A DNA stretch of 63,868 nt, filler included, from Perkinsus chesapeaki ATCC PRA-425 (GCA_013115145.1; 6 parts of 6 records of this genome joined end to end with filler, not necessarily neighbours in it), one strand, 5' to 3'. Shown: positions 4,829 through 11,189, counted from the first letter of the whole stretch. Translations and numbers: made by a program. The notes: generated by a model from the letters alone, not told the origin.

Positions 4829-4930
4829 GTAACTTCAATATACCCTGGGAGGTGGTTTAGTAACTTCAATATACCCTGGGAGGTGGTTTAGTAACTTCAA
4901 TTTACCCTGGGAGGTGGTTTAGTAACTTCA
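4829..4930. repeat. 31-bp tandem minisatellite, right part
   Basis: Three or more copies of the same unit as 2946-3044, same orientation. Confidence 0.9.
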
Positions 4931-5016
4931 GTTTCGACACAATCATCTATGAATCACAATTTAGCAACTTTGTTAAAATCAATTTCGAATATAGGAACTT
5001 CAATTCTGACACATAC

Positions 5017-6244
5017 TTCCTAAGTTAGGAAATTCCTAACGCAGCAAGAAACTTAGACACGGAATATCCAAGTTAGAACTACCCTTCCTGTTGAATTCGC
5101 GGGAATAATGGCAGGCGTCGCCAAACTTGCAGCTCCCAGTGGGAGCTGCCCACCACGCTTAAGGCCCTTAAGACTTAAGGCTTAAGTAAACGGCATTATG
5201 GCATAATGATTATGCCCTGGGCATATCTTATCTTGCGCTTGCTGCCATTACGACACAAAGAGGATGAAGACAGAGATGTGCTGTAGAGTCTTCAGTGTAG
5301 ACTGACTGACGGGGAGCCTAGGTGGGGCCTCTTGGGACGTCAGTGAGCACACCCGTGACCATAAACTTTATGGCGTAAAGAAGGATCCTCCTCTGTGTGA
5401 TTCTACTTCAGAAGTAAATCGGCAGTAGATGCGCCTTGTAACTTACAACTTGTAAGACGTAACCTTTCAACTCCTGACGATAAGCAACGCCATACCTGTA
5501 AGCGCATACGTAGCCGAATATAGCCGCGTACCTCATAATCCTACATACACCAGTAAATAGAGTCTCGACTTACTTGTCTCTATTATAGAGAGCATCAATA
5601 GAGAACTCATCTTCCCTTTCCACTTTGCTGACCATAGGTGATGTCGGCCGCGCAGAATAGGCGCCAAGGTTTGGGGCCCAAACCTTGGGCCTCTGCCAAA
5701 CCACTGAGTGGTTTATCAAATAGAAAACAGTTTGGCGCCTACAATAAACTTTATATCAGATATATTATAAAGTCGATTATCAGTATACAATAATTGTCAG
5801 TAAAATACTGATCCACTCATTAACGTTAGACTTGTCGATTTTGGTATTTCCTCGCACCGCAACGATGTGACCCTGCAGATTGACTTCGTAGCGAATGGCA
5901 GAAGACGGCGTTTGGAGAACCGTGATCCCTAGTTCTGAAAAATCCAGATAGCCAAGCGGCGATAGACAACGTTCGCAGAACGGCCGTTTGAGAACTCTCG
6001 TAAACACCAGTAAAATTGACTAAAATTACGAGTAAATCAAGTGGTGGACTTGGGGATACTATCCCCGGCATAGTGACTTGACCAAAGCGCGAAGTGAAGA
6101 ATCCTGCTGGCCATCTCTAGTAGAGATTCTCTTGAGTAGAGCTTGACTAAGTCAAGCTGGTAGAGATAAACGGCAGAGTGGGTAGAGATCCCACGGCAAG
6201 AAGTGGGCCGATTTAAGTAGTCTACTTAAATCGGCCCACTTCTT
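5017..6244. repeat. Field of short odd-length (1-nt spacer) palindromes, often chained
   Basis: 19 inverted repeats with arms of 6-23 bp and a single spacer base were counted by eye, e.g. 5129-5149, 5664-5688, 6140-6158, 6198-6244. Confidence 0.9.
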
Positions 6245-7424
6245 CGGTTGTTTGGAGTCAAAACGTTTGACTGCTAGTAAAGATGCTCCCGCGTTCACGG
6301 CGAACGCGGTACTTCTCTCAGCCACAGTGCTATTCCTAAAAGTGTTGGTAAAGTCCTCGCTGCCACCGCTGCTGCTAGTGCTAGTTTAACCAGGCCAACC
6401 TCTTTGAACTTGTTCATAACCGTTTCAGACGCCTTCAACCAGACCAACGGGGGGCGGAGTCTTTCCCGATGGTTGCGAGGAGGCTCTTGCCAAGAGCCTC
6501 TTGGCCATCTCACGCTTGAGCCTGGTCTTATCCGGCGATGTTACAGACTCTTTAGTGGGTCCGGGTCCCGGACTCCGGGAAGACCCGAGGGAAATTTCAT
6601 GGGGTTCTTAAGGTATTCAAGATCCCTAATAGTCCGGGACTCCCACTTCCAGGCTTTCGAAGTTTCCTGTCGAAGTTTTTGTACGCTCCGACTCGGAGCC
6701 TCCGAGTCGGTGAGCTGATTGCCGCGACTCCTGTTCGGTCGTTGTTTTGGCTGCGCAGCCAAAAAATCGCGCTCGCCCAATTGTCATGATATCAGATTTG
6801 AATTTCAATCGCTAGTATCACGCTATATCCCAAGTTTCGTGTTCTTATTCGTAAAATTCAGTAAGTTATATGGTTCGCACTGTATATCCCTCACGGTGAG
6901 GGCCTCACCCATTTAGGCGGGTGGAGGTAGATACGTGGATACAACTATAAAATGTGTAATGTAAGTTATGTGTGGCGAGCGCTTATTGATTGTGTGCAGC
7001 CCTTCATTTATTTGCCTCTACTCATTTATCACAATGAAAATACAACATCTTTAAGCTATGTTATAGCCTAGCGTAAACACTTCTATGATTATTAGAGTGA
7101 GGAGTTGATCATTTGTTACTGATAGGGTTCTAATACTAATTATAGTATAATTATTATACATCAGCTGTTTTACTCCCACTCGTATTATTAACATTTTATT
7201 TGTATAATATTGAATGTCTAATTCCAATAAGTCTCGAGTTAAGATGGTACCAGAGGAGGAAGAATCTAACACAATGTCGATCATGTGCACGCATGCGTCC
7301 GGTTCTTTTCATAAATGTCAATTGCTCTTTACCACTAACTACACAAACTACAACAAGATAGAAACATATAGGATCTTTGAGTGAATGGTTATCATTCAAT
7401 AACTGAACGTAGCCAAGCCGATGT

Positions 7425-10400
7425 TTACGCGTGCTGAGCATCGAACTTGGGATACCTGAAACCAACGAAAATACATGCAGTCAGCGGTCGGAAGGAATCT
7501 ACTTCTCAGCAGCCTGCTCCCAGGTCATGCGATCGCTGCAAAGCTTGTAAACAAGATCGGCAACATCAGCTATTGGCAAGCGGATCTGACTCATACTATC
7601 CCGCTCACGAAGAGTGACCTGATACAAGGGCGATTAAACAAACGGTGCTAGACAGAAAGTTACAGTGTCATCCTCGAGACTCTGGAAATCAATAGTGATA
7701 CCGAAGGGGATACCGATCTCATCAGTTCTGGCATATCTTTTACCAATCGCCTGGCCACTGTCATCGACCTGGCAAAAGATGGTCTCATTCCGAGCCACAG
7801 GTCCATGGGAATCACCTTGTAACTGATACCGTGCTCCTTGAGAGCATCGGTTATCTTGTGCATTGCAGGCTTGAACTGGGTGGGGTTACTTGAAATAGGC
7901 AACACACTCACCTAGAATAAATAATGATATCCGTAATAGCCGAGCGATACCCTACCTTGGTGGGAGCGACCACAGGAGGCAGAGCAAGGTAGCATCGAAG
8001 CTCTTGATCCTCCATTTCGCGGGAACGGAACCTGATCGAACACTCCTTCCAAAGTCCGATAGGTTAGAAGCTTACGTGTGCTCCAAGATGGTATAGATGA
8101 TACGGCCAACACCGAAGGCAGGTTCGATTACAGAGGGGATGAAAGGCTGGAATGATAGTAATAGGAAGCATACAATTTGTTAACCTACAACTTCCTGAAC
8201 TCTTTTAGTGACAGTCTTCACCTTAACCATATCTCTTGTGATATTATACCGAGCACCAGTGCAGATCTTAAGTTCATAAACACCATTCTGAAAGCGAAGG
8301 TACAACGGATGTGGCTGGAGGTTCTTCCTTACCTCCTCAATGGCAGCGTCCATCTCAAGCTTTTGCTTGTCGGTCATATCGTTGAGAGCTTCAATAACAG
8401 TACCTACAGGAGAACCGTAACACAAAGGCACTAGGAGTACTAAAGTGATGATGGGCAATAACGAAGAGCTACATAAGGCCGAGAAAAAGTTAAGTATCAT
8501 ATACTGACAGACTCTGAAAATAATAATTATTACAACAAGTGGACTATCGGTGAACGTCCGCAAACGAATTATTGAATAATATCCATTTAATAAGGGTAAT
8601 ATAATATGTTCAATTATAATAGGTAATATTAAGTAATACAATATATCTAATAATATCTATTAACATTATTAGATTTCCTAAGTGACAATGTGGTGAGCTT
8701 ACCGGCTTCCTTCTTGAATGCAGGGCCTAATTTGCCCTTGTTGATCTTGCACTCTACAAATTCAACATCCTTCGGCTGATCAAACTTGTAGTTGGCCTTC
8801 AAGTCAACCTGTGGACAAAACTATTGCGGTAAAACGATCATGTCTCCTCTCACCTTCGAGGCCTTCGAGTGTGCAGTGAGATCGTAAGCAGATCTATCGG
8901 CAATACCAACAATTTCCGTCCAGCCATACGAAAGCAACGCCTCCGCATCCCAGCAGTCACAAGCGTAATGAGCCATCTCAGACTTAAGATGCTGACGGAA
9001 TCTGAGCACCCGCGATGGTGGCCATCTTCGAAGAGCAGCAGGGCTCTTACCTGAGCATGTCGCCATTGACACCAGCCTTGACGAGGAAAAGGTAAGTACG
9101 TCCCATAAAGTAACCAAGTGTCTGATGATTACAGAATGGAGCGGTATGAAAAATGCTCTCCTCTTCTCACCTCGTTGTTAATCATACCGATATCAACCGC
9201 CTGTCTCAATGTGAGATCAGTACGGAGCTTGCCATCGGTCAACTGGTTATGTTGGGGGAACAAAGGTAACTAAGAGTAGTATTGATGGCTACAACAAGCG
9301 GCAGCAACAACGGACGTACCTTAAGATCGGCAACCTTGTGGAAGTCGGGGTGGTCTTTATGTTCAGGATGAACGAAATGCTCAATCTCAGCCATGGGGAA
9401 CTCACGGACACGCAGAAGGCCAGCTCGGGGGGCAATCTCATTACGGAATCCAAGACCGATTTGGGCGGCTGAGAAGTACTAATTAATAACGGAGAAGTAG
9501 TGACAGCTTACCAGCAAAAGGCATCTTGCCGCCATTTTGCTCGAGAAGTCGACGGAAGTTGACAAACATTCCCTGGGCGGTCTCAGGACGGAGGTAGCCG
9601 ACCTGGTGTAAGATAGACGCCGATACTAGCAGCTAGGCTGCCCTACCAGATTGCCCTGAGGACCGATAGTGGTCTTAAACATGAGGTTGAAGGGATAAGG
9701 GAAGGAAAGATTCATCTGTTGCTTGATACCTGCAAAGGAGGCAGAGGAGGTATTCGATCCACAGCAGCTGCCACCGCCTCTTACCAAGCTCCTGGAAGAT
9801 CTTGTCGACCTCCTCAGCACTTAGGCTGTCGGCGACTCTGATCCACTTTTGCAACTAACAACACAGTCCACACGTCGGCGAAGTCTACGGCCCACCTGTT
9901 CCCGATCGCCTTCGAAGCTTGGGTCCTGCAACAGGGCTTCACACTTCTCCTCCAGGAGCTTGTCGGCCCTATAGTACTCATCAGGGTTCTTCTCGTTCTT
10001 AACCATCAAATCGGTGAACTAAAAAAGCAGTCGACAAACTCTTCAAACGCACTTGTTACCTTTTCGACGTGACCGCTAGTCTTGAGGACAATTTCAGGGG
10101 TAAGACAAGTGCCTGAGCGAGATGGTCACAGCGAGACGGAGCAAATGAAAACGCTTACATTGAATCTCAAGCATGTTGTCATGATTGATGAAATGACGTC
10201 TCCAGAGAGCCTCAAGATTAGCCTTCAGAGCACAACCCGGTGGGCCGAAGTCGTAGAGACCTGCAATAAAGTAATGTAAGGGNNNNNNNNNNNNNNNNNN
10301 NNNNNNNNNNNNNNNNNNNNNNNNNNNNNNNNNNNNNNNNNNNNNNNNNNNNNNNNNNNNNNNNNNNNNNNNNNNNNNNGGGAATAAAGTAATGTAAGGG

Positions 10401-10968
10401 AATAAAGTAATGTAAGGTAATAAAGTAATGTAAGGTAATAAAGTAATGTAAGGTAATAAAGTAATGTAAGGGAATAAAGTAATGTAAGGGAATAAAGTAA
10501 TGTAAGGGAATAAAGTAATGTAAGGTAATAAAGTAATGTAAGGTAATAAAGTAATGTAAGGGAATGAACAAGTTGAATTCTGATAATCGTGATACAACTT
10601 ACCAGCAACACCACCATAAATTGAGAAGGAAGGAGTGTACAGGAATCGACGCTTGCAAAGATCCTCCAAACCTGATAATGAACAATACTATCTACTGAAC
10701 AACAACAACAAAAACCCACCAGCGCGGTTGATCTTGTTGGCAGGGTTCGATTCGGCCTCGACTTCAATGAGCTTCTCAACATCAGCACGTAAGCTGGTGA
10801 GGATGTCAATCTCGGGTTTAAGCTCATCCCTGCTGACACCTTCCTTCTTCATCTGGCGAACCTTCTCGCCCTGGGCCTTCATCTGAAGGAGATGTGGTAT
10901 GAAATATGCATGAATGAAGGCTCCACCACCACCTTTGCTTGCAATTGAGCTAAGTTAGCTTCACTCAT
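7425..10968 (-). CDS. GARS1: Glycyl-tRNA synthetase (eukaryotic alpha2 type) with N-terminal WHEP-like domain, multi-exon
   Basis: Exons read [12 protein letters not shown]|[40 protein letters not shown]|[53 protein letters not shown], then the anticodon-binding domain [11 protein letters not shown] and final exon YPKFDAQHA*. Confidence 0.96.
10263..10563. repeat. 18-bp intronic minisatellite in GlyRS, with internal N run
   Basis: Unit AATAAAGTAATGTAAGG(G/T), about 11 visible copies. It explains the LPYITL-type repetitive ORFs in the track. Confidence 0.95.
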
Positions 10969-11189
10969 TGTCTTTAACAGTCCAGAAACAGTAGTGTTGA
11001 AAAACCGACGGTAAAACCGAATAGGTTGAGTGGAAGTATCCAGTCAACTATAAAACAGTAAAAATCCATCCCCCAATCCAACACAACAAGACACTGCAGA
11101 AACCAAATCACATGCCATCAATCCAACACGGCCTCCTTACCCTTGAAATCTACCGCTCCTTCCTCAACTTTCCCACCAGTAACACTACT

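Follow-up and report, generated by a model that had tools for sequence, protein, structure and literature searches.

Two intergenic stretches of a contig of the clam parasite Perkinsus chesapeaki, a polyploid species, are densely filled with short palindromes whose arms are separated by exactly one base, and most of them are joined in pairs into a 22-bp module of fixed geometry, built each time from a different local 8-mer. These palindromes are probably excision footprints of cut-and-paste transposons, of the hAT type or with another DDE transposase of the same chemistry. The mechanism is of a known kind, that of hairpin-mediated excision footprints; the form that it takes here is unusual, being stereotyped, long and very dense. 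The argument starts from what is directly observed, namely the geometry of the modules, their statistics, the target motif, the single-copy status, one pair of empty and scarred sites and the restriction to intergenic DNA.

Palindromes with a one-base spacer

The contig concerned (JAAPAO010000882.1, from GCA_013115145.1) is 10,652 bp long and lies whole at positions 4829-15480 of the window, i.e. the entire 63,868-nucleotide stretch of DNA that was analysed. The sequence-only reading of this DNA had listed 19 palindromes with a one-base spacer and arms of at least 6 nt between positions 5017 and 6244. All of them were found at these coordinates, and two that had been missed (5173-5187 and 6052-6066) raise the total to 21. 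Maximal perfect palindromes with arms of at least 6 nt were then counted against 200 dinucleotide-preserving shuffles. The claimed excess over chance was borne out: 21 palindromes with spacer 1 in 5017-6244, for a shuffle mean of 0.27 (maximum 2). The wider stretch 5000-7200 contains 31 (shuffle mean 0.53), and 6 were counted in 14901-15480 (shuffle mean 0.15).

A scan of this contig by spacer length confirmed that the enrichment is limited to spacer 1, spacers 0 and 2-11 being at chance level; even palindromes (spacer 0) number 0 or 1 per stretch. With 9-nt arms and one mismatch allowed, odd palindromes outnumber even ones by 15:2 in one intergenic stretch and by 3:0 in the other. No excess was found for any spacer in the genic stretches 7201-10282 and 10380-14900, and the one-base-spacer palindromes are confined to the two intergenic stretches of the contig (4930-7424 and 14840-15480). 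The field also contains a single strong even palindrome (6745-6764; 10-nt arms, no central base), which a model with a one-base offset leaves unexplained.

The contigs assembled in Logan from three runs (X1, X2 and X3) of two studies cover 4977-6999 with zero differences. In X1, the depth of the palindrome region is about 105, against about 118 for the neighbouring single-copy gene. Positions 5026-6917 are single copy by depth, with repeats on either side at 4940-5025 and 6970-7273. An artefact of assembly, amplification or cloning would fit with the break of the X1 contig at the 47-bp palindrome and with the fact that the X1 run may be the source data of the assembly. However, the contigs of the second study (X2 and X3) span the same region at single-copy depth, and random chimeras would be neither reproducible nor limited to 7+1+7; we regard the probability of an artefact as close to nil. 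The arms are mutually unrelated in sequence and therefore do not form one repeat family, as had been stated, and the single-copy depth agrees. On these same two grounds, a dispersed palindromic repeat family (REP, MITE or organelle type) was rejected. The sequence-only reading had named three ways in which it could fail, i.e. similar counts in shuffles, reads that do not support the sequence, and a multi-copy element; what was found is counts far above those of the shuffles, reads in agreement and a single copy.

A 22-bp module

Arm length is strongly peaked. Among the 34 intergenic palindromes with arms of at least 7 nt, 22 have arms of exactly 7 nt and 6 have arms of 8 nt, the others having arms of 9, 10, 10, 11, 12 and 23 nt. 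Such a mode at 7 with few longer arms is expected if the mechanism sets 7 and the longer arms result from chance extension, plus a small tail from 9 to 23. Most palindromes are paired, with centres 7 nt apart, and the chaining reported previously (X-n-X'-n-X) is real and regular. Each pair corresponds to a 22-mer derived from a local 8-mer W, as W[1-7] + reverse complement of W + W[2-8]. It can also be written a1 K n K' a1' K n', where K is a 6-mer, K' its reverse complement, primes denote complements and W = a1 K n'.

Modules were scored on 14 base-pair constraints, with a threshold of at least 12/14. The 3.2 kb of intergenic DNA contain 21 such modules (10 perfect), of which 17 (7 perfect) are in the field 4930-7424, scored to 7480, and 4 (3 perfect) are in the field 14840-15480 (Table 1). 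By comparison, 7 kb of genic DNA contain none, and the value in shuffles is 0.01. Every one of the 10 perfect modules has the complements of a8 and a1 at its two centres. Direct 6-mer repeats show the same regularity, with a main peak at period 14 in the two intergenic fields (9 vs. 0.37 and 4 vs. 0.08 in shuffles). A weak peak at period 16 (4 vs. 0.33) reflects a variant in which one filler base is added (e.g. at 5017), and no peak was found at period 8, the period of classical short footprints. At 5359, 6052 and 6113, what look like lone palindromes are accompanied by a third arm that has undergone one or two changes, while the modules at 5281 and 15130, whose middle arm is mutated, are detectable only through their 14-nt direct repeat.

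Table 1. Genes, palindromes and 22-bp modules of the contig (window positions; module scores out of 14 constraints)
Feature	Position	Remarks
Intergenic field downstream of GlyRS, to contig end	4930-7424	31 one-base-spacer palindromes
Variant module with one filler base	5017-5040	W[1-7], reverse complement of W, A, full W (period 16)
Module, 12/14	5132-5153	first palindrome 5129-5149 with 10-nt arms
Three-palindrome chain on CTTAAG	5158-5187	perfect module 5166-5187 nested in an older palindrome centred on 5165
Perfect module and later lone palindrome	5194-5225	module 5194-5215; palindrome 5211-5225 overlaps its third arm
Decayed module, 12/14	5281-5302	one middle-arm change breaks both palindromes; 14-nt direct repeat intact
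Module, 13/14	5359-5380	one third-arm change
Module, 13/14	5435-5456	first base of W itself, not its complement, at the second centre
Palindrome with 12-nt arms containing a module, 13/14	5664-5690	palindrome 5664-5688; module 5669-5690
Module, 13/14	6052-6073	
Module, 12/14	6113-6134	
Lone palindrome, 9-nt arms	6140-6158	no recognisable third arm
Lone 47-bp palindrome, 23-nt arms, one central base	6198-6244	longest in the window; X1 contig breaks there
Decayed module, 12/14	6250-6271	
Perfect module	6483-6504	
Perfect module	6559-6580	G TCCGGG T CCCGGA C TCCGGG A
Perfect module	6685-6710	module 6685-6706; second palindrome extends to 11-nt arms (6688-6710)
Perfect module	6888-6909	
Plain 8-mer, 'empty' state	7071-7078	G CGTAAA C
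Perfect module	7138-7159	within multi-copy repeat 6970-7273
GlyRS stop	7425-7427	minus strand
Small gene		next to GlyRS (its upstream neighbour)
Methyltransferase gene	about 12.7-14.4 kb	plus strand
Second intergenic field, beyond methyltransferase 3' end	14840-15480	6 palindromes, 4 modules
Perfect module	14935-14956	
Perfect module	14990-15011	
Decayed module, 12/14	15130-15151	one middle-arm change
Perfect module	15339-15360	

Target motif

The 21 8-mers deduced as targets share a symmetrical preference. The strongest signal is a G or C at positions 1 and 8 (34/42; p=2e-6), followed by Y2/R7 (34/42; p=3e-5) and T2/A7 (22/42, i.e. 52%; p=5e-4), T2 being weaker than A7 (8/21 vs. 14/21). The preferred target would be S-Y-N4-R-S. 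Dyad symmetry in an 8-bp preference is expected of a dimeric transposase. The Hermes hAT transposase favours 8-bp targets of the form 5'-nTnnnnAn-3', and the Hermes/hobo system shares with our modules the 8-bp duplication and the dyad-symmetric target preference (PMC10368747). With 21 sites and so weak a T2, the match to the Hermes motif is partial; the strong G/C at positions 1 and 8 is a further difference from Hermes, and the transposase would here be known through its scars alone.

This motif and the fixed geometry also bear on a polymerase process acting without any transposon, by short-range template switch or U-turn at forks, or by snap-back in break repair (e.g. polymerase-theta-type end joining). 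About 7 nt of the opposite strand would be copied before a switch back, and iteration would give X-n-X'-n-X. Formally, the chain would also result from reflecting its last 7 nt again and again at the final base, the window is without a transposon, and the module at 5435 has the centre predicted by a U-turn (a1 itself, with a 6-nt first arm). Template switching is known to create and perfect short inverted repeats (PMC5453318, PMC8604942), and short-range template-switch mutations resemble our palindromes by their clustered changes and by local inverted copies that make or perfect hairpins (PMC5453318, PMC7954356, PMC8604942). These events are not known to have a fixed length, a fixed 8-mer duplication or a target motif, whereas all three are present here. 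Variable lengths, positions and spacers without target duplication would be expected from such a process, but the spacer is always 1, the arm 7 and the period exactly 14. Moreover, a U-turn predicts a1 at the second centre while most modules carry a1', and the dyad-symmetric motif is typical of the target of a dimeric enzyme. The snap-back synthesis put forward in the sequence-only reading meets an additional difficulty, as annealing in a snap-back would require a loop of at least about 3 nt. A polymerase process is therefore, in our judgement, quite unlikely.

A putative empty site and scar in a repeated sequence

The repeat at 6970-7273 is present in about 3.5 copies by depth and has TGTG...CACA ends (solo-LTR-like); a repeat search on it found no terminal repeats. 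Over 7038-7264, two to three of the copies match the window exactly. A divergent one, seen on contigs of X1, X2 and X3, displays 17 substitutions, mostly transitions, the window copy being the richer in A/T. At the place where the window copy has the plain 8-mer, this paralogous copy has 14 extra nt behind position 7071 and, with 7075 A>G, reads G CGTGAA G TTCACG C CGTGAA C, i.e. a perfect module. The bases at the two new centres are complementary to those that end and begin the 8-mer. The divergent copy also carries a degraded version of the 7138 module. A single event of 14 nt thus separates the 8-mer from the 22-mer, and its direction may be a gain, or a loss by slippage.

Gene context and related species

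Locus L006, a contig of 10,652 bp with an identical gene order in reverse orientation, is taken to be this same contig. GlyRS is encoded on the minus strand, and the protein deduced from its exons is about 90% identical to GlyRS of P. marinus. Its 3' end is a mini-exon located after an intron (7425-7457; 10 codons), and the protein continues past the apparent stop at 7502. The NCBI model KAF4652810.1 (911 aa; window 7498-12569, L006 2912-7982) apparently results from the fusion of GlyRS with the upstream small gene, which in P. olseni is a separate 253-aa model beside a GlyRS of 669-674 aa. A GlyRS intron contains an 18-bp minisatellite (10283-10560) with two unit variants, split by an assembly gap of 97 N. 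A 103-aa gene with introns is annotated inside the palindrome field (5447-6417; L006 9064-10034); it has no Pfam match on record, no RNA support was seen for it, and it is probably a spurious prediction. At the contig end, a 31-bp tandem repeat of 3.3 units (4829-4930, also 4992-5005) reaches a depth of about 843 against about 105 for single-copy DNA, and it is probably the reason why the assembly stopped there.

The order methyltransferase/small gene/GlyRS is common to P. chesapeaki, P. marinus and P. olseni. In the latter two species, a helicase gene begins 300-550 bp past GlyRS, whereas the P. chesapeaki contig continues past GlyRS, up to its end, with at least 2.5 kb of DNA that is unalignable. 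No alignment of the palindrome-bearing intergenic DNA to P. marinus or P. olseni was obtained. Over five orthologous loci of these two species (115 kb), we found 0-2 weak modules per locus and no bias between odd and even palindromes. With such scarcity, the process would be lineage- or locus-specific, and the difference between the species at this locus points to a recent burst confined to the P. chesapeaki lineage. The module-like 22-mers of P. marinus and P. olseni (12-13/14; L001:17193, L002:17022 and L003:2025), for which chance gives about 0.05-0.1 per locus, may be old scars of the same kind; the two of P. marinus are at corresponding positions of its two GlyRS loci.

Several searches concerned the products of the contig. 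No tRNA and no Rfam family were found by scanning it, and the palindrome region is absent from all the listed RNA runs. A Pfam scan of the pieces other than GlyRS detected no domain. The search for homologous proteins with an exon ORF gave no match, exact look-up of 11 ORFs of the window found none on record, a protein atlas search on the upstream gene returned nothing informative, and metagenome scans by protein and by the 31-bp repeat unit gave no match.

These data make it highly improbable that the hairpins are functional and kept by selection, whether as cruciforms, origin or centromere DNA, protein-binding dyads or structured RNA downstream of GlyRS (3' UTR or non-coding transcript). The palindromes are indeed dense, often perfect and confined to non-coding DNA, and the 47-bp palindrome scores as terminator-like. 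Against such a function, the arms are unrelated to each other, the region is linked to no RNA family, tRNA or listed RNA run, no conservation is seen in P. marinus or P. olseni, and the modules show every stage of decay, which suggests that they decay neutrally. The same modules are also present inside a repeat copy and in two separate stretches; the latter makes the single cruciform-based structural locus envisaged in the sequence-only reading unlikely.

Excision footprints as the best explanation

The preferred reading, i.e. excision footprints of hAT-type transposons, can be set out in four steps. An element would insert at an 8-bp target W = a1..a8, preferably S-Y-N4-R-S, and duplicate W. 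At excision, the transposase would nick one nucleotide into each flank, an offset known for hAT chemistry from Hermes, and each flank would close as a covalent hairpin (left a1..a7-a8'-a7'..a1'; right a8'..a2'-a1-a2..a8). The hairpins would then be opened far from their tips (at least 8 nt, on the 3' side), leaving 3' tails with an unfolded inverted copy. Finally, as these tails would share only the 8 complementary nucleotides that come from the duplication, they would anneal there before gap filling. The product would always be the same 22-mer (a1..a7, a8' a7'..a2' a1', a2..a8), with 14 additional nt and two overlapping 15-bp palindromes centred, 7 nt apart, on the complements of a8 and a1. 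This derivation would account for the 7-nt arm, the distance of 7 between centres, the increment of 14 and an outcome that stays the same irrespective of where the hairpin is opened. The lone palindromes (arms of 7-23 nt, the 47-bp one included) would be ends joined after loss of the other duplicate, and the chains (5158-5187 and 5194-5225) would be later events landing in earlier scars. The transposon itself, the opening far from the tip and the annealing step are what this model supposes.

Published excision footprints provide the closest parallel. Elements of the hAT superfamily duplicate 8 bp (PMC10368747), and the footprints of Ac/Ds, a hAT element, contain inverted copies of the flank (P nucleotides) that arise by resolution of flank hairpins and are centred on the complement of the base beside the element; in S. 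cerevisiae, their arms reach 20 nt and microhomology at the joint is common (PMC5873905). Ac/Ds footprints in plants, S. cerevisiae and Candida albicans resemble our modules in the 8-bp duplication kept on both sides, the position of the palindrome centres, the implied hairpin intermediate and the microhomology at the joint (PMC5873905). The retained duplication is found here as arms 1 and 3, direct copies of one 8-mer, and odd palindromes centred on the complements of the end bases (as defined in PMC5873905) are found with spacer 1 only and in every perfect module. Ac/Ds experiments differ in giving heterogeneous and mostly short footprints (0-3 nt in Candida), against one long form here, with both hairpins fully unfolded and 14 nt added. 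They are also experimental excisions, whereas the scars described here are natural, fixed and extremely dense. The sequence-only reading had postulated an undescribed process of sequence writing. A recurrent writing from local sequence, event by event, still holds and hairpin opening is its best mechanism, but the geometry is that of the published Ac/Ds footprints (PMC5873905), and 'undescribed' must be given up.

Other hairpin-forming systems fit less well. V(D)J P nucleotides and Transib resemble the modules in that a covalent flank hairpin is opened off-centre, resulting in templated palindromic additions. RAG and Transib hairpins have no one-base offset and give even palindromes, with P tracts of 1-4 nt, and Transib duplicates 5 bp. 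The symmetry is here strictly odd, with even palindromes at chance level, and the duplication is of 8 bp, which speaks against the RAG-type hairpin mentioned in the sequence-only reading. MULEs form flank hairpins and duplicate 8-11 bp, their excision in yeast being mostly precise (PMC5499845). A duplication of 8 bp would agree with Muta1 (8-9 bp), and hairpins on the flanks are a trait in common (PMC5499845). A MULE, or another superfamily with 8-bp duplications and offset hairpins, may be the source. Scars of the P-element type were rejected, as they would carry a shared element-end sequence. The dense short palindromes in non-coding DNA of Volvox organelles (PMC2670323) are similar in appearance, but such organelle and bacterial families have a common consensus and are spread by copying, whereas here the DNA is nuclear and single copy and each palindrome derives from the sequence at its own site.

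The genus does have DDE cut-and-paste transposons, as Dada in P. marinus shows (PMC3706591). A search of the window for an element that has both terminal inverted repeats and an 8-bp duplication found none, no 'filled' site was seen, and the runs agree with each other throughout 5026-6917. For transposon traffic, some 21 scars in 3.2 kb, of which half are still perfect, is a very high density. Taking perfect modules to be about 3-4% diverged, this amounts to roughly one event per ten substitutions. As short classical footprints are absent, the outcome of repair would have to be unusually uniform.

These features have to be weighed in relation to a nuclease or domesticated transposase that would act without a mobile element, making 8-bp-staggered breaks with hairpin ends at S-Y-N4-R-S, repair of which would write the 22-mer directly. 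Geometry and target motif would be the same as in hAT excision, no element is present in the window, the phenomenon looks lineage-specific, and hairpin-making domesticated hAT transposases exist (Kat1, cited in PMC10368747). However, two direct copies of the 8-mer would require gap filling across the staggered cut before the hairpins form, which a cycle of insertion and excision provides naturally. We thus consider this possibility very unlikely. Its simplest form, a single-step staggered cut with hairpins, was rejected: by derivation, it would invert the 8-mer without adding length, and the 14 nt would not be gained.

Implications for Perkinsus genomes

The literature, of which our coverage is incomplete and gives no proof of novelty, yielded no account of a genome in which such scars are naturally present at high density; within the same incomplete coverage, no palindrome feature of Perkinsus nuclear DNA was found.

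A bolder proposal, unlikely though conceivable, is that P. chesapeaki has a lineage-specific and probably still active process of sequence writing. A hAT-like transposase, either hyperactive or domesticated, would act together with an unusual repair of hairpin ends and add a stereotyped 14-bp inverted-plus-direct duplication at S-Y-N4-R-S. Repair would proceed by annealing over the 8-nt duplication and not by opening near the tip and end joining, at about one event per ten point substitutions; the extreme version would do without a mobile element. Such a writing process would contribute greatly to the build-up of intergenic DNA and potential hairpins.

If the palindromes are excision footprints, the 22-mer would be a clean and countable mark of past cut-and-paste transposition, which could be scanned for in any genome, even when the elements are gone. 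Excision scars would then not be rare curiosities: they would make up about a tenth of an intergenic region and would have seeded dozens of perfect hairpins. The uniformity of the scars suggests that hairpin-capped breaks in this perkinsozoan are resolved by long unfolding and microhomology annealing, and not by Artemis-like opening of the tip.
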